Assembly (NCBI GenBank): GCA_021613535.1
Contig: CP075493.1
Coordinates: 12,896,001-12,960,000 of the forward strand
DNA: 64,000 bases
DNA from: Adineta vaga
Taxonomy: Eukaryota > Animalia > Rotifera
Direction of reading: 5' to 3'
Shown here one piece after another: positions 6,632 to 25,816 of this stretch. The notes under the pieces are model-generated. The model had not been told where the DNA came from and did not search any database. It saw only the letters and a list, made by a program, of their open reading frames with translations. Positions within the stretch are counted from its first letter, which is position 1. Every line of letters starts with the position of its first letter. Both the position numbers and the translations under genes were made by a program.

Positions 6632-7086
6632 ATGTTTTTCTTCTTTCTAACCACATTATCTTTTGTGAAAATAAAAACATACAACGGAAAGAAAAGCACG
6701 TGGCTGCACAGAACGGAAAGAAAAAATAAATATAATTTGTGTATTTTATGCTTGTCATATTTTCCTCTATAACGATTAGGATAAAGATCGATGTGGATTG
6801 CTTTGCTTTAAAAGATGCGATATGATCTTAATGCCTCTCATTCAGGCAATTCTTTAACCTACGCTACGATTCTTACTCATTCGTTGTTTTTTTGTATGCA
6901 AATATTTTTATTTTAATGAATGAATCATGCGTACAATGACGAATATAAATTGCTGAATAAGTCATTCAAATGTATACGACGTTAATAGTATAGTTGATTT
7001 GTTTTAGAGAACGAAAGAAAAAAAAATCCGTTTTCATACACACATCATTATCAAACAAACATATTTTTCGATTTTTTCTTAGGAGT

Positions 7087-9412
7087 ATGCAAGCAGTTAA
7101 AATTTTACCATCGATTTTCAAAGCAGCCAAAACTATCTATGAAATCAGTAAGCAAGTCAAAGCCAATAAAAATCAATGTCAACGTAAATATTTCTTTTTT
7201 CATAATTATGAATACGTTTTGATATCATTTGTAGGACTAAGTGAACGAGTTCAATGTGTTGTTGCCATTCTCAAAGATGGTTCAATTGATGATTCAGATA
7301 CAGTAACAATGGAAAGAGCATTACGAACCTTAGCAGACACCTTACAGGAAAGTGTGGAGTTTGTTAAAGAATTTACTGATTCTTCTATTATCGGTCGATT
7401 TTTACATAATTCTGATTTCCAACAAAAATTCGAAGAACTTACAATACGATTATCAAATAGTGCTATTGATCTCAATTTAGCTCTAAATATCAGTTCAATA
7501 TTTGATCAACAACAAGATGTATTTGATCGGCAAGCTGATCTTGCTGAAATATCATCAAAACTAGATGAAATTGCATTGGAAATGGTTCGCAATCAAGAAG
7601 AATTACATAAACAAAATAAAAATATCAAAGATGAATTTAAGAAACGATTTGATTCATTCAAATTTCATCTTCAACAAGATGTATTGAAAGCACAGAAAGG
7701 TATCGAAGCAAAAAAGATCGAAGAAGAATCAAAACTTTTCCTACATATTCCATATCATGATTTATTATACGAAGAACGAATTGGTCAAGGAGGATTTGCT
7801 GATGTTTATAAAGGTATATGGCTTAGTCAACATCATCAAGTCGCAATTAAAGCAATTCGTATTACATATCTAACAGATAATGTCAAACAAAGTGTTCTGA
7901 ATGAAATTGCTACGATGTATAAAATTCGTTACAATCATGTCCTAGGTGTTTTGGGAGCATGTATAGAACCGAATTGTTATGCTCTTGTGGTTGAATATAT
8001 GTTACTTGGATCATTATTTGATGTTTTACGAAAGAATGAACATATTCATACCTGGAACGATCGATGGTCAATTGCATTACAAATGACAAAAGGTGTTAAT
8101 TATTTACATTCGATATCTATTCTTCATTGTGATATTAAATCATTGAATTTTCTGATGGATAAAGCAGTTGATGGTTATTTGGTGAAAATTAGTGATTTTG
8201 GTCTAGCAAAAATACGACAGGAGACAACTCGACAAACGAGTGAGAGTTCTGAACAATCAGGTACACTTCAATGGAAAGCACCTGAATTGTTAAAATTCGG
8301 TAAACCATCGACAGCAAGTGATATCTATAGTTTGGCTATTGTCTTTTGGGAGTTAGCTACTAGATGTATACCTTATGATGGATTGGACGAAGCAATTGTT
8401 TGTCAAGGTGTTAAAAGTGGAGAACGACTTGATATACCTCAAGATGTACCATCGAATTTTGCATCACTTATTATCAGTGCATGGCAACAAGATCCAAATA
8501 AACGATCAACAACTCAAATACTCATTGAAGAAATTAAAAAGATGAAATCAAATACAATAGAAAAATCAGCAATGTGAGTTTATTGAAAGATAATCTAATT
8601 AATTAAGAATGTGGATTCTCTTATTTAGATCAAAGTTTCCAGTAGATCAAGCTCAACCAAATGATAATCGTATGTAATTTCTATACTAATAACTAAATTC
8701 TAATTGATTCTGTTTGATTATTGCAGAATTACCCAACAGTCATAATCCAAAACTTGAAGCCTTAATCAGTCAATTTTCGCCGTGTTCTGCCATTAATTTA
8801 AGTAAACAACAATTGACCGATTCCGATATGGATATTGTCGTGCAACAAGCAATTGTCAACAAACAATGCACGAATCTCTGGTTAGAAAATAATAAAATTA
8901 CATCCAAAGGTGCTTCAATTCTTGCTGATTCATTACGCAATAGTACAACATTGAGTGATCTGTGGTTGTATGGTAATCTTATATCTGATACGGGAGTACA
9001 ATATCTATCGTCAGCACTTTCAGTTAATAGAACTGTAAGAAAACTTGGTCTTGCTTCAAACAATATTACAAATGCAGGTGTATCTCATCTTGCTGAAATG
9101 CTCAAGAGAAATCATACATTGATTATGTTAGGATTGGCCATGAATAAAATCGGCAATCAAGGAGTACAAATGTTGTCGAATGTGATTGCTCATCAAAATT
9201 CTAGTTTACAAGTGTTAACACTTGATCGAAATGAACTTATAAGCGATTCAAGTCTCGATTCATTTGTCGATATGATCAAGCAGACTCGATCAATGAAGGA
9301 ACTATGGATAAATGATTGTAGTCTCTCGGAAAAAGGCAAGAAGAAATTGAAAGAACGAATTGCATTTAAAAAAGATTTTAAATTAGTAACGACGTATGAT
9401 CATTCTTCGTAA
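7087..9412 (+). CDS. MLKL-N-terminal-like 4-helix bundle + TKL-type protein kinase + RI-like LRR (4 exons)
   Basis: Exons 7087-7183, 7235-8573, 8629-8669, 8727-9412 splice in frame via GT-AG introns; N-terminus KQVKANKNQCQRLSERV; kinase GQGGFADV, VAIK, HCDIKSLN, DFG, APE; 28-aa LRRs LxLxxNxIxDxG. Confidence 0.85.
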
Positions 9413-9538
9413 TTAATAAAAAAAAAAGTTTTTATCGAGAAATATTTAATTTTTTCAAAACAGATTTTGATGGAAATTGAAAATAAGATTAAAAGAATTC
9501 TAAAGTCTAGTCATAAAGTCTAATTCAATCAGAATGGA

Positions 9539-10957
9539 TTATATTGGAACAGCACCTCCTTCTGGATAAGTAGCAGCAGTACCTCGTTGCGATTTGTATT
9601 TCGATATATCTGATAACTCGACAGGTTCCTTTGTAGAACATGAACCATATTCACTGTTGTGCTTTTTCGTACGTAACCAAAAAGCAATACCAATGACTAT
9701 TCCAACGATAATAGCAAGTAAACCGACTACAATGCCAATTATAATGAGCATCTTTTTGGATAATAAACGATGACGTTTTTTGATAACCAAAGCTAAAAGT
9801 TACAATAAAGTAATAGTAAGAAATGGAATTTTATAGTGAAATGAAACTAACTTTTTTTATTACAAAAGTGACTTGTACAACATTCAATACGACCTTCAAA
9901 CGTTGCTCCACCATAAGATATTTTACCTAATTGTTTATTAACACATTTCGAAATGAATGTACGTATAACAAAGGCTGGATATTTGGTACCAGTTACAGTA
10001 TCACGTCCTTCGAGACCAATAATCGTCTGAAAAAGATCAATTTAAATATGAAAAGAAAACGTTTATATTATTTAGTATTACTTACTGCGCATGCTTCTGA
10101 ATAGCTAGAAGTTCCTGTTTTATACACATGTGGACTGGATTCATCTAAAACCATGCAACCTGTCAAACCAGTGATACGTGAATCACATGTATAACATCGA
10201 AGATTAGATTCTTTCACAGCATTGGTTAAAATATCTCGATTACATTCGGGAGTATTACAACAGAATACAGATGATGCACTTGTCAATTGACTTATACGTT
10301 GGGAAACATCTTTAACAGTTGCTTGACAGTTGTTTATGTAAGATTTATGATGAGTTCCTTTATGAGCTGTGATCTATTCAATACAACATGTAATAACATA
10401 TAACAAAGGATAAAATTTTATTTTAAACTTACCGAACAAGATTCGGTTGCACTACTAAGAGTCGTTATATGATTAACATCATTAATACATATACCATCAA
10501 TTACAGTACATTTACCGATAATACATTTGCGAGAAGTTAACGCAGGTAACGGTGGTGAAGGTAAAGAATTACAAAGATCTTCATTACAACAAAACTGATA
10601 TGATGAACTTCGGCATGTACGTGCCGGTACTAAATCTCGAGTTGTTAAACCTTCAGGAGTTACAGTTATCTAAACAATAACAATAAAAGACGATTAATAA
10701 ATAGCGAATATAAATATACGAACTGAACACGAAGAAAATGGTTCATGATCTTTTGAAGTCACTTTGTGTACACTTTTTGATTTTGATGAAAATAAAGTAC
10801 CACACGCTTGTCCACCACTACATGAGTAACAAACCAAACTCTGACTCATATCAATCGCTGTTTGAAAAACAAGTCGATAATTAACGATATGAATTTAGTT
10901 AGAATATCACTCACCATGAATGAATATGAAATAAAATGTAATAAATAAAATCATCAT
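9539..10957 (-). CDS. Type I membrane protein with three Ly6/uPAR (three-finger)-like domains, ~6 exons
   Basis: Signal peptide MMILFITFYFIFIH; domains begin CYSC/CIIGKC/CYTC and end CCNEDLCN, CCNTPECN, CCTSHFCN; TM helix and short tail in the last exon 9539-~9790. Confidence 0.75.
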
Positions 10958-22228: not shown

Positions 22229-25200
22229 TTAGGAAACACATTTCTCTTGTTCATGTATGTATATTTGTTGCGTTTGTTTGATTGCATCGAGTTGTTCATT
22301 AATAATACGATCTTTACTAAGATTTCGAATTAATTTATAAATATCTGTTAGATGCGTTGGTTTTCGTGCTGATATTGACATTGTGCAGAATTTTTCATAT
22401 TCTTTTCTAAAATTTTTTAATTCATCATAGAGAAAATAATTCGGACCACCTTGTTGTTGTTGTTTTGCTATAACAATATTCTTCTCTTCTTCCATCATTC
22501 GATTTAAACTTGAAAGAATTGGATCATTTTCTTTCGGAATTCGAAGAATATATCTAAAAAAATCCGATAAACCAATTACCCATTGTTTTAATAGATCAAG
22601 ACTTGTTTTCATATCATTCAATGATTGTTTTCTTTTTTCCGTAGTTGTTTCATATTTCAATACATAATTGACTTTAGAATGTTGTGTTGATGTACATTGA
22701 CATTTATCACATCGATCGGAAAATATATGAACATTATCCGATACGATCCAAAATTCTTGACAAAGGATGAGAATGGGTGGACACTTGAGACAAAGATGAA
22801 CATATCTTTGTACAGCTGATGGATGTAATTGAATAAAAGTTTTGGATGATACTCGTTCTACTAATAAAATATTTCGAATATTATTTCGAATGGTTTCTAA
22901 CATCGGACGAATCATTTTATTGATTTGCCATTGAGCATTTTCAACGGATTGCCAATTTTTTTGATCACATGGTTTTAAATCTCGACAGATATATTGTAGA
23001 AAATGAGTTGTTTCTTTAACGGATATTTCCCAACTTCGTTGATATTCTTCTTTTTGATAAACATCAAATTGTAGACCATTTTGTCGTGCAATTAAATAAC
23101 GAAATGCTTCATTATCAAAACAGAATGTATTCATTTTCTTCAATGATATATTCTTTATTGAATTGGAATGAAGTAATTTTTTCAACAATGGAACTGTATT
23201 ACCAGGTGCGAAGAATGTTGCTCGAGTATGTGTAAAACAAAAGATAATATTATTACGAATTTTCTCACCTAAAAAACTCAATAATTGAGTAAAATATGAA
23301 CGAAATAGAATATTTAATTTTGATTCATTTGGTTTAAGAAGAATACAAACTGCATTGATATATGGAAGGCTATTAATATAAGATAGAATATGTTGCATAA
23401 TAAGATCATCTTGTTCCAATCCACGTGTATCACCCATACCTGGTGTATCAATTAATCGAATATTAAATTGTGAATTAATTGGTATAATATATGATTTACA
23501 TTGTTGAGTCACTGATTGTCCCGGATGAAGATGATCTTCATTTGAATCAATGCCACCAAGTTGAATGATATGTTCTTCAAATTGATCACCGACAGCTAGA
23601 GGAAATGATACAGGAATGAGTGTGAGAGGTTTATCAGCACATGCTTTATCAAATGACTCAAGTTTTAAATAATTGATTAAAGCATTAATAAACGTCGTTT
23701 TTCCAACTTGAATTTCGCCTAACAGAAGGATATTAACATATTTATTCGTTGATAAATTTGTCGGATCAAAACGAAGTCTTTTACGTGCAGAACCTTTACC
23801 AAATGAATCTTCCCATAAACTTTTTCGTGGTCCAGTAACTTCATTTAATGAAATAACTTTCATTTTTGATGGTTGAGTTGAACAAAATGAAAAATCTGCA
23901 AAGACTAAATCACTTGTTTTTTCTTCATTGAAAAATTGTTCAGTATATTTATTCCATTCACCAAGATATTCACGTTGTAGATCATCATCGAAACAAAAAA
24001 TACGTTTTCCTGGTCGTTTTCTCATTAATTCTTCTTCAATCATATCTAAATTTTCATTATCACTGGTTAACAATTCTTTTACGTTCCAATATTCTATATT
24101 TCGTTGTTTTAATTCATTAACTAATTGAACTTTTTCAATAAGTCGTTCACGTTGAATAATGATATTTTGACATTCTCTCAATAATGTTGTTGCTTCATGA
24201 TCAATTAAAGATTCTTTCATTTCATTCTGTTTTATATTTCCACAACGAATGGCTAAAAGTGAAGCACGAAGTCGACTCATTTTCTTTGGATAAGATTGAT
24301 TGATTTTTTCTTGTCGTTGCTGAAGATCATCATAGGCTGGCTTAAAATAAGTTAGAATGGATTGTTCTTTTGCAGAAGGAATGGAGAGATGTACTTGCTT
24401 TCGTATAGATGATAATTCATAGAGATATAATTCAGTTTGATTGATGAGAGTTTGATTCAATGGAACAAAGATACCTTTTTCACTTGGAAACCATGAACAA
24501 AGTGTTCGAACTGGTCGAAGTGTATATTTCATTGGAGGATATTGATAAACATTCGATCGAATTTGAGTTATTTTTTGACAAATATCTTCGAGTTTTGTTA
24601 GATTGGTAATCTCATTTATATTGGTAAATACTTTCAGATCAGTAAATTGTTCATAGAGAAGTTTATCATTCGATTTGACTGAAAATATATTTCGTGCTAA
24701 TTGTGCTTGAATTTTCTCTAAAAGTTCATCGAGAGCTGTAACATTGGTTGGTGCTAATTGTAGAAAAACGACTACATGAATACCGTATTGAATTTCCGTC
24801 ACAATATGTGTTGCGTCGATATTTGTACTGAGAATAGTCGGATTATCTTTCGTTCCATCAATGTATTGATTTGCTGCTAAATAACTATGTTTTGTTTTAT
24901 GATGAAAAAAGAAATATCGAGAATATTCATTGATGGTAAATGGATAATTGTTTAGTAAAGATATTCCTTTTGTTGTTGTTAAATTGAGATATATACTTAG
25001 ATATAATTCTTTATCAATACCAATCATATCGAGAAGATCTCGTGCTTTAAGTCGGCCACTGGTTACTACGACAGGATTTACTTCATTTCGTAATGAAATT
25101 GATCGTTTCGAAATATATAATGGTGAAGTGGATAGTAGTTGATCTTTTGTTGCATCATATAATGATCCAAGAGAACCCGATGGATCAATAGCTAAACGTT

Positions 25201-25303
25201 GAATACCTTGATCTAGTGGAAAGACTTGAGAATTACTTGTATATTTTCCAGGTTGTCGTGCCATTGAGCGAGATTGGTCAAGCCGAGATTTATTAACACC
25301 CAT
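22229..25303 (-). CDS. Stonustoxin-like MACPF/CDC domain + helical region + septin/AIG1-like P-loop GTPase + Cys/His-rich C-terminus
   Basis: RLAIDPSGSLGSLYDA and ATHIVTEIQYG (SNTX-like); GEIQVGKT, DTPG and FCFTH GTPase motifs; probable start MGVNKS at 25303 (ORF open from 25405). Confidence 0.7.
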   Translation of the reverse strand: MGVNKSRLDQSRSMARQPGKYTSNSQVFPLDQGIQRLAIDPSGSLGSLYDATKDQLLSTSPLYISKRSISLRNEVNPVVVTSGRLKARDLLDMIGIDKELYLSIYLNLTTTKGISLLNNYPFTINEYSRYFFFHHKTKHSYLAANQYIDGTKDNPTILSTNIDATHIVTEIQYGIHVVVFLQLAPTNVTALDELLEKIQAQLARNIFSVKSNDKLLYEQFTDLKVFTNINEITNLTKLEDICQKITQIRSNVYQYPPMKYTLRPVRTLCSWFPSEKGIFVPLNQTLINQTELYLYELSSIRKQVHLSIPSAKEQSILTYFKPAYDDLQQRQEKINQSYPKKMSRLRASLLAIRCGNIKQNEMKESLIDHEATTLLRECQNIIIQRERLIEKVQLVNELKQRNIEYWNVKELLTSDNENLDMIEEELMRKRPGKRIFCFDDDLQREYLGEWNKYTEQFFNEEKTSDLVFADFSFCSTQPSKMKVISLNEVTGPRKSLWEDSFGKGSARKRLRFDPTNLSTNKYVNILLLGEIQVGKTTFINALINYLKLESFDKACADKPLTLIPVSFPLAVGDQFEEHIIQLGGIDSNEDHLHPGQSVTQQCKSYIIPINSQFNIRLIDTPGMGDTRGLEQDDLIMQHILSYINSLPYINAVCILLKPNESKLNILFRSYFTQLLSFLGEKIRNNIIFCFTHTRATFFAPGNTVPLLKKLLHSNSIKNISLKKMNTFCFDNEAFRYLIARQNGLQFDVYQKEEYQRSWEISVKETTHFLQYICRDLKPCDQKNWQSVENAQWQINKMIRPMLETIRNNIRNILLVERVSSKTFIQLHPSAVQRYVHLCLKCPPILILCQEFWIVSDNVHIFSDRCDKCQCTSTQHSKVNYVLKYETTTEKRKQSLNDMKTSLDLLKQWVIGLSDFFRYILRIPKENDPILSSLNRMMEEEKNIVIAKQQQQGGPNYFLYDELKNFRKEYEKFCTMSISARKPTHLTDIYKLIRNLSKDRIINEQLDAIKQTQQIYIHEQEKCVS

Positions 25304-25816
25304 TATTACGATTGAATGATGAAATCTAAGATAGAGTTTACATAGATTTCTAAACAAAATCCAATACTTACTTAGTAACAAAATGAATATGAATTGAAAT
25401 TGCATCTAAACGTTTATGTTTCTCTTTTCGTTTTATTTTACAAAACAAACAGAAACATGTAAATGTTATTTACACAACTTGATTTCATTTTGCGTATGAA
25501 GAAAAAGAAAAGAGGAGTATTTTTTTTCAATTTACAGTCAAACATGCTGAGTAATCCTCTCTACTTTATAATCAAATGGAGGTGTTTTGACAAACATTGA
25601 CATTTTGTGTGGATATACTACATGCTTCTGATGATGAACTATCTATATTTTCATATCAAATTTAAAAGAGATTAATAAAATTACTACGAGTTAAAATTGT
25701 CTCTAGTTGATCCACATCATATAGAATGTGAAACCGAAAATCAAAAACATTGCTTTCAATCTCAAAATAAAATAGGATGTCAGATAGGAATCAGTTCAAG
25801 AATAGACATGATGTTT

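Follow-up and report, generated by a model that had tools for sequence, protein, structure and literature searches.

A 64,000-nucleotide (nt) stretch of the genome of the rotifer Adineta vaga (contig CP075493.1, positions 12,896,001 to 12,960,000; referred to here as the window) contains, at positions 7087 to 9412, the gene for the protein AvMLKL-4. Reading of the sequence gave four exons separated by three GT..AG introns of 51, 55, and 57 nt, with the frame kept at all junctions and a coding total of 2163 nt, or 720 codons and a stop. The window is AT-rich eukaryotic DNA, with a GC content of 31%. The spliced product is identical to GenBank entry UJR17341.1 (P0001; locus tag I4U23_004236; Adineta vaga; 720 amino acids [aa]), and the sequences across the junctions in that protein, NQCQR/LSERV, EKSA/ISKF, and NDN/QLPNS, match the exon model. 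The locus is one expressed gene encoding a single 720-aa chain. An MLKL-type four-helix bundle comes first and is connected by a two-helix brace to a TKL kinase; a disordered linker then leads to a leucine-rich repeat (LRR) domain of the ribonuclease inhibitor (RI)/NLR type with eight repeats. The exons and introns are as follows.

7087 to 7183, plus strand: exon 1, encoding aa 1-32 and base 1 of codon 33; it holds the start codon, helix 1, and the start of helix 2 and is identical to P0001 residues 1-32.
7184 to 7234, plus strand: intron 1, 51 nt, GT..AG, stop-free and in frame; skipped in the RNA-type contigs of runs X1, X5, and X6 and kept in the DNA run X10.
7235 to 8573, plus strand: exon 2, encoding aa 33-478 and two bases of codon 479; it holds the remaining bundle, the brace helices, and the entire kinase (Pfam MLKL_N, 32 bits; PK_Tyr_Ser-Thr, 189 bits).
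8574 to 8628, plus strand: intron 2, 55 nt, GT..AG; skipped in X5 and X6 contigs and absent from the relative P0035, where the open reading frame (ORF) is continuous.
8629 to 8669, plus strand: exon 3, 41 nt, encoding aa 479-493, a portion of the disordered, fast-evolving linker; found in RNA contigs.
8670 to 8726, plus strand: intron 3, 57 nt, GT..AG; skipped in X5 and X6, while an X1 contig joins 8573 to 8727 via 41 letters.
8727 to 9412, plus strand: exon 4, encoding aa 493-720 and the stop; it holds the end of the linker and the complete LRR cassette.

The ORF listing shows two entries for this gene, a 527-aa ORF at 6994-8577 and a 232-aa ORF at 8714-9412. Intron 1 is concealed inside the 527-aa ORF because it is stop-free and a multiple of three in length, and its removal yields the sequence NQCQRLSERV. 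Transcript evidence was taken from contigs of four public runs (X1, X5, X6, and X10) placed on positions 6900-9600 (2701 letters). The run types given in the index are guesses; the X1, X5, and X6 contigs were taken to be RNA because intron-less contigs come from RNA alone. The joint 7183>7235 was present in contigs of X1, X5, and X6, which belong to three studies, and the joints 8573>8629 and 8669>8727 were present in X5 and X6 contigs. A 1613-nt contig of X1 consists of 7235-8573 and 8727-8934 with 41 letters, corresponding to exon 3, between them, and 25 extra letters 5′ of 7235 that cross intron 1. Therefore, a single assembled transcript extends from the bundle across the kinase and linker into the LRR. 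Introns are retained in the deep run X10, which is evidently DNA; for instance, its contig 13 covers 8567-8934 unspliced.

Further support for the gene model came from P0035, a metagenome relative that is 48% identical over its full length and lies on a 30%-GC contig, in which the kinase, linker, and LRR are encoded in one uninterrupted ORF. P0035 also carries an in-frame 17-aa insertion at the site of intron 1 (locus L012, residues 37-53), and these 51 nt are stop-free, as in AvMLKL-4. In other relatives there are stops at this site and the ORFs do not read across it, and the presence of a stop-free in-frame intron 1 in both AvMLKL-4 and P0035 is probably chance. The possibility that intron 1 serves as a retained alternative coding segment was considered and rejected, since the ORFs of these other relatives do not extend through it, it is missing from the RNA contigs, and helix 2 would be interrupted by the inserted residues. 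The initial annotation of this stretch, made from the sequence alone, had joined the two ORF entries into a four-exon gene for a protein of about 720 aa, with a 51-nt, stop-free first intron hidden in the ORF whose removal restores QCQRLSERV. All of this was borne out by the sequence, the database protein, and the spliced contigs. Its alternative of separate mRNAs for the kinase and the LRR, which turned on junctions 8573/8629 and 8669/8727, is excluded for assembled transcripts, both junctions being spliced in X5 and X6.

For the domain assignments, the exons were searched singly and the whole-chain analyses were run on the identical database protein P0001. The domains and catalytic motifs were located as follows.

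7093 to 7497 (spanning intron 1), plus strand: MLKL_N four-helix bundle, aa 3-120, with helices at aa 3-23, 28-46, 55-77, and 91/95-111 (Pfam, phmmer, AlphaFold2, Foldseek, and VIA-align).
7498 to 7737, plus strand: brace, aa 121-200, two long helices between the bundle and the kinase (AlphaFold2 helices 124-140/142-157 and 163-198).
7762 to 8565, plus strand: TKL-type protein kinase, aa 209-476, with Gly loop, K238, E256, H330-C-D332, N337, D353-F-G, and A381-P-E (Pfam PF07714).
7849 to 7851, plus strand: catalytic motif, VAIK Lys, K238.
8131 to 8133, plus strand: catalytic motif, HCD Asp, D332.
8194 to 8202, plus strand: catalytic motif, DFG.
8278 to 8286, plus strand: catalytic motif, APE.
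8747 to 9394, plus strand: RI/NLR-type LRR domain, aa 500-715, eight β-strand/helix repeats of 28-29 residues (Pfam LRR_6).

The N terminus is predicted, by sequence profile and by structural model, to be an MLKL-type four-helix bundle. The Pfam family MLKL_N (PF22215; cutoff, 27 bits) matched P0001 residues 9-120 with 64.7 bits (E = 8e-18). When the exons were searched separately, exon 1 aligned to profile positions 3-26 and exon 2 to positions 39-116; the two matches are collinear, and the gap of about 12 unaligned positions between them fits the removal of intron 1. Among all Protein Data Bank (PDB) sequences, the matches to the bundle at an E value of 0.006 or less (phmmer) were solely MLKL chains. 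An AlphaFold2 model of residues 1-200, built from 31 family sequences, showed a bundle followed by the long brace helices, with a mean predicted local distance difference test score (pLDDT) of 85 and a predicted template modeling score (pTM) of 0.70. In a Foldseek search with the bundle model, ranks 1-9 were human MLKL executioner-domain entries, with AtMLKL2 next; the E values for the bundle alone were weak (5.6e-3), as is usual for helical bundles. Structural alignment with VIA-align gave a Z score of 14.8 to 6ZVO (root mean square deviation, 2.7 Å over 132 residues), 13.2 to mouse MLKL 4BTF, and 12.8 to AtMLKL2. The top eight entries were MLKL, the first unrelated bundle had a Z score of 11.2, and the coiled-coil (CC) domains of the plant proteins Rx and NRG1.1 scored 8.1 and 7.7, respectively. 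Since helical bundles score high by chance, the MLKL assignment relies on the sequence profile combined with the rank order, VIA-align Z scores, and coverage. The bundle is basic at its start, its first 45 residues containing 8 K/R compared to 2 D/E. In the full-length AlphaFold2 model (mean pLDDT, 83.6; pTM, 0.51), the linker at aa 475-497 was disordered (pLDDT below 50). The top Foldseek match of this model was mouse MLKL 4BTF, collinear over 480 columns with a high root mean square deviation, which suggests a common domain order with uncertain packing.

The kinase matched the Pfam family PK_Tyr_Ser-Thr (PF07714) with an E value of 2e-55 in P0001 and belongs to the TKL group, because its closest solved kinases by sequence are CTR1, ZAK, RIPK2, and MLK1/4. 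All catalytic residues are retained, and the kinase is accordingly predicted to be competent. In an alignment of 37 bdelloid family members, G216, G218, K238, E256, H330, D332, K334, N337, D353, F354, A381, P382, E383, and R456 were invariant, and G355 of the DFG motif was more than 90% conserved. The activation loop (aa 353-383), DFGLAKIRQETTRQTSESSEQSGTLQWKAPE, is Ser/Thr-rich (T363, T364, T367, S368, S370, S371, S374, and T376) and includes a conserved E-T-S/T-R-Q-S/T stretch. The initial annotation had likened the HCD motif to the non-RD motifs of many immune receptor kinases. The motif is indeed present, but the argument built on it is weak: HCD is found only in the Adineta branch and in a few sequences from metagenomes or Rotaria sp., HQD occurs in a side branch, and HRD is the motif of the Rotaria orthologues of the same architecture. 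A non-RD motif is therefore not a trait of the bundle-kinase-LRR architecture, and it was rejected as a family mark of immune receptor kinases.

The LRR domain was modeled with strands at 514, 542, 570, 598, 626, 655, 684, and 711 and a pLDDT of 90 to 97. Its phmmer matches in the PDB included ribonuclease inhibitor (E = 4e-30), NLRP14 (E = 9e-26), and rabbit NOD2 (E = 1e-22), as well as NLRP3. A docking prediction between the bundle and kinase (aa 1-480) and the LRR (aa 495-720) gave a score of 0.00, which is evidence for neither side. Comparison of P0001 with the Rotaria orthologues showed identities of 52 to 56% for the bundle, 68 to 69% for the brace, about 70% for the kinase, 12 to 14% for the linker, and 63% for the LRR. 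Judged by these values, the LRR appears to be under purifying selection like the remaining protein, which argues for a ligand or partner that is itself conserved and against a receptor engaged in an arms race. Thus, the initial annotation was correct in its MLKL-like four-helix bundle, from which neither the profile nor the model departed, in the retention of the VAIK, HCD, DFG, and APE motifs, and in the RI/NLR-type LRR that follows the kinase.

The LRR cassette of exon 4 is not restricted to this gene. It was found at no fewer than 56 other loci in the A. vaga genome, with 30 to 48% identity and matched over nearly its full length, and these loci cluster on C1 (4.0-4.4 Mb), C3, and C4 (8.3-10.2 Mb). 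Ten long ORFs sampled from them (L001-L010; e.g., C4:8838700-8841000 and C1:15432500-15434900) comprised seven ADP-ribosyltransferase (ART)-LRR proteins, one RING-LRR protein, and two with no recognized N-terminal partner, so that the cassette loci look like a large enzyme-LRR repertoire in A. vaga. The closest nonorthologous LRRs in the databases were those of Rotaria RING-LRR proteins, at 51% identity. Together with the wide spread of the cassette, this suggests that the LRR of AvMLKL-4 was drawn from the rotifer's own cassette pool.

A survey of rotifers showed that the bundle-kinase-LRR architecture is conserved in at least six species. Annotated three-domain orthologues were found in A. 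steineri (P0002), A. ricciae (P0003), Rotaria magnacalcarata (P0015), and R. socialis (P0023 and P0025). The A. vaga genome contains at least 11 MLKL_N loci (e.g., C5:394542-394874, C4:9586898-9587233, and C3:17746242-17746571), compared to the four A. vaga MLKL genes counted by Wang et al. (PMC11476962). Several of them sit in short open frames of 152 to 260 aa and may encode the bundle on its own, with no kinase attached. Only the AvMLKL-4 locus joins the bundle-kinase core to an LRR in this genome; for the three nearest A. vaga kinase paralogues (49 to 58% identity), no match to the LRR lay closer than about 30 kb. When the bundle and kinase were used to build a maximum-likelihood tree, the 13 LRR-bearing sequences fell on one side of a branch with support of 100/99, and one Rotaria model with no LRR recorded (P0013) fell inside this group. 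This single LRR clade indicates that the LRR was fused to the core only once in bdelloids, at an early stage that predates the Adineta-Rotaria split.

Outside this clade, the bundle-kinase core is found with other partners. A bundle-brace profile searched against 1.84 billion representatives gave 1156 clusters at an E value of 0.001 or better. Among the 74 longest of the top 150 representatives, MLKL_N was detected in all 74 and a kinase in 73; Sel1 repeats were detected in 51, TPR in four, NHL in two, and ankyrin, LRR_6, and ART in one each. One protein, P0155 (L011:1483-4887), is encoded by an intron-less 1134-aa MLKL_N-kinase-long RI-type LRR ORF on a 58.5%-GC metagenome contig of non-rotifer origin. 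It is 37% identical to AvMLKL-4 over the bundle, brace, and kinase but only about 30% over the LRR, and it is an independent bundle-kinase-LRR fusion. The Sel1 group includes P0203 and about 50 related representatives, which are intron-less MLKL_N-kinase-Sel1 metagenome proteins of about 600 aa. One MLKL_N-kinase-Sel1 member carries the label of a Coxiella-like metagenome-assembled genome ("Coxiella sp."), and an MLKL-domain effector in a Legionellales symbiont figures in a 2026 preprint. A scan of bacterial and archaeal genomes with P0203 returned kinase or Sel1 pieces only, none with a bundle. Another protein, P0142 (1109 aa, with 28 near-identical metagenome members), combines ART, TPR, MLKL_N, a kinase, and a second ART in one chain.

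The neighborhood of the gene in the window was also analyzed. An immune gene cluster was considered and rejected, the neighbors being unrelated (a CRAL/TRIO-like ORF, an APH-type kinase, a permease, a G protein-coupled receptor, and an FG-GAP protein). The sole possible exception is a 1058-aa ORF at 22229-25405 on the minus strand, 13 kb downstream of AvMLKL-4, with weak SNTX-type MACPF and AIG1/GTPase matches; it is a candidate pore-forming immune gene. A 1439-aa ORF at 47823-52142, also on the minus strand, consists almost entirely of FG-GAP-like repeats (25 stretches).

The gene itself has been published. UJR17341.1 is listed as AvMLKL-4, one of four A. vaga "MLKL orthologues," in a study that did not find RIPK in Rotifera (Wang et al. 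2024, Int J Mol Sci 25:10626, PMC11476962). In that study, the N-terminal domain of AvMLKL-1 caused lytic death of HEK293T cells, and the killing was impaired by mutating I10, I17, C31, R37, T77-K78, F99, N103, L106, L113, or L115 (PMC11476962). By our own alignment, AvMLKL-4 has I10, I17, C31, and R37, as well as F98, N102, L105, L112, and L114, each one position below the published numbering; the latter five are kept in 90% or more of the family. The terms "LRR" and "leucine-rich" occur nowhere in the text of PMC11476962, nor does it discuss the catalytic intactness of the rotifer C-terminal kinase domains; the intact kinase and LRR tail of AvMLKL-4 are thus unremarked there.

The initial annotation had called this protein a single-chain sensor-kinase-executioner. 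The gene model, the bundle, the catalytic residues, and the LRR type all support this description in part, while the mechanism it implies goes further than the features themselves. We propose, tentatively, that AvMLKL-4 is an autoinhibited MLKL-family effector, a kinase-activated, necroptosis-like killer, which we regard as quite possible without calling it probable. In the resting state, the basic bundle would be kept inactive by the kinase and brace, perhaps with help from the LRR. Engagement of the LRR by a conserved ligand or partner would then enable cis or trans autophosphorylation of the Ser/Thr-rich activation loop by the kinase, which would take the place of RIPK3. The freed bundle would then oligomerize and attack membranes, leading to a necroptosis-like defense or death response. 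In favor of such a scheme are the retained catalytic residues, the contrast in the family between inert full-length proteins and a lethal AvMLKL-1 N-terminal domain (PMC11476962), and the modular logic of the relatives, in which repeats of the NHL, TPR, ankyrin, Sel1, or LRR type are attached to one bundle-kinase core. Several points weigh against it: the activity of the kinase is a prediction from its motifs, the modeled packing between the domains is uncertain at a pTM of 0.51, and in the text of PMC11476962, AvMLKL-1 is the sole A. vaga paralogue named among six robust killer N-terminal domains. In addition, the LRR is as conserved as the bundle, and the gene is single copy in A. vaga, which would fit a conserved partner or regulatory role equally with pathogen sensing. 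A broader version, in which bundle-kinase-repeat proteins would be a widespread but unrecognized class of kinase-centered, NLR-like, all-in-one receptors where the repeat senses, the kinase replaces both the NACHT switch and RIPK3, and the bundle kills, seems doubtful to us.

Other explanations were weighed against these data. AvMLKL-4 might be a signaling kinase rather than an executioner, with the bundle as a membrane-targeting, oligomerizing, or regulatory module, the LRR as a scaffold, and downstream substrates, as in RIPK2, IRAK, MLK, ZAK, or non-lethal plant MLKL. The strict invariance of the catalytic residues across the family argues that catalysis matters, and the nearest solved kinases, CTR1, ZAK, RIPK2, and MLK, are signaling TKLs. 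Moreover, none of the full-length proteins AvMLKL-1 to -4 showed cytotoxicity in HEK293T cells, so AvMLKL-4 is harmless to human cells in this form, and the text does not list its N-terminal domain with the robust killers (PMC11476962). However, the bundle retains residues needed for killing by AvMLKL-1 (PMC11476962), it is basic like the lipid-binding face of MLKL, and its fold matches MLKL executioner domains specifically. Killing and signaling are also not mutually exclusive, and we consider a purely signaling role possible, if on the unlikely side.

The role of the LRR may also differ from that of a sensor. It could be an autoinhibitory lid of an executioner or kinase, or a dock for a conserved endogenous partner, such as an upstream adaptor or a guarded host protein, with another protein doing the sensing. 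This would agree with an LRR that evolves no faster than the remaining protein, with Adineta and Rotaria orthologues that form one well-supported clade of the same architecture and are represented by a single copy in A. vaga, and with a cassette that the same genome attaches as an all-purpose module to the C termini of ART and RING proteins. However, the best LRR relatives include those of NLRs, and receptors of conserved ligands, such as NOD1 and NOD2, also evolve slowly; we find the lid or dock distinctly unlikely. Barely credible is an artifact of the gene model, in which the kinase and the LRR are two adjacent genes or the N terminus is a generic coiled coil. The two parts are separate entries in the ORF list, and helical bundles do reach middling fold scores by chance. 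But spliced contigs bridge the domains, which refutes two genes for assembled transcripts, the ORF of P0035 is uninterrupted, and the architecture is kept across six or more species. Similarly, a generic coiled coil is at odds with the MLKL_N profile match at an E value of 8e-18 and with the top eight fold ranks, which MLKL fills above every unrelated bundle.

Under the broader reading of the family as all-in-one receptors, AvMLKL-4 would represent the first case in animals of a necroptosis-like pathway that is self-contained, independent of RIPK, and housed in one polypeptide. An animal MLKL with a working kinase and an NLR-type LRR, in a lineage where no RIPK has been found, would show how killing of the necroptosis type can operate in the absence of the vertebrate necrosome. 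The label "orthologue of MLKL" in the only paper on AvMLKL-4 hides the most informative part of its architecture. The recurrent fusion of the bundle-kinase core to varied repeats, in rotifers, in Glomeromycotina, in a GC-rich organism, and possibly in bacteria, yields a concrete, testable hypothesis.

Vertebrate MLKL is a pseudokinase that depends on RIPK3 and has no C-terminal repeat domain. Of the features of the MLKL family, AvMLKL-4 has the bundle, the two-helix brace, and the kinase fold, whereas the pseudokinase state is absent. Compared to the vertebrate structures 4BTF, 2MSV, and 6ZVO, these parts stand in the same order, the bundle aligns with Z scores of 13 to 15, and the activation loop is likewise Ser/Thr-rich, but the bundle identity is just 21 to 27%, and AvMLKL-4 differs in keeping all catalytic residues, in carrying an LRR, and in belonging to a lineage without RIPK found (PMC11476962). 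The AtMLKLs (6LBA) are similar in the bundle, with a Z score of 12.8 for AtMLKL2, and are pseudokinases, in contrast to the intact catalytic residues of AvMLKL-4. Wheat Pm13, which confers race-specific immunity with cell death, has an MLKL_NTD-brace-kinase arrangement with all key catalytic residues (PMC10951266). It shares with AvMLKL-4 an MLKL-type bundle and brace joined to a kinase that retains these residues, although the Pm13 kinase is of a plant RLK-type subfamily and no C-terminal repeat has been reported for it (PMC10951266). For Glomeromycotina, in silico analysis has pointed to MLKL homologues that carry Sel1 repeats (PMC8778642). These and the MLKL_N-kinase proteins with Sel1, TPR, ankyrin, or NHL repeats resemble AvMLKL-4 in having a bundle, a kinase, and C-terminal repeats; they differ in the type of repeat, with identities of just 25 to 37%.

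Among LRR-containing systems, no Roc or COR match, as would be found in ROCO/LRRK proteins, was detected in the Pfam scan of P0001, and the LRR lies C-terminal to the kinase. The NLRs, which combine NACHT or NB-ARC with LRRs and in some cases with HeLo or CC-RPW8, share with AvMLKL-4 an N-terminal helical domain of the killing type and a C-terminal RI-type LRR. No NACHT or NB-ARC match was found when the exons and P0001 were scanned against Pfam, and AvMLKL-4 is therefore not an NLR, as its center is a protein kinase in place of the NACHT/NB-ARC STAND ATPase. Its logic is similar to the "all-in-one" logic of the fungal HeLo-NLRs (PMC12881547).

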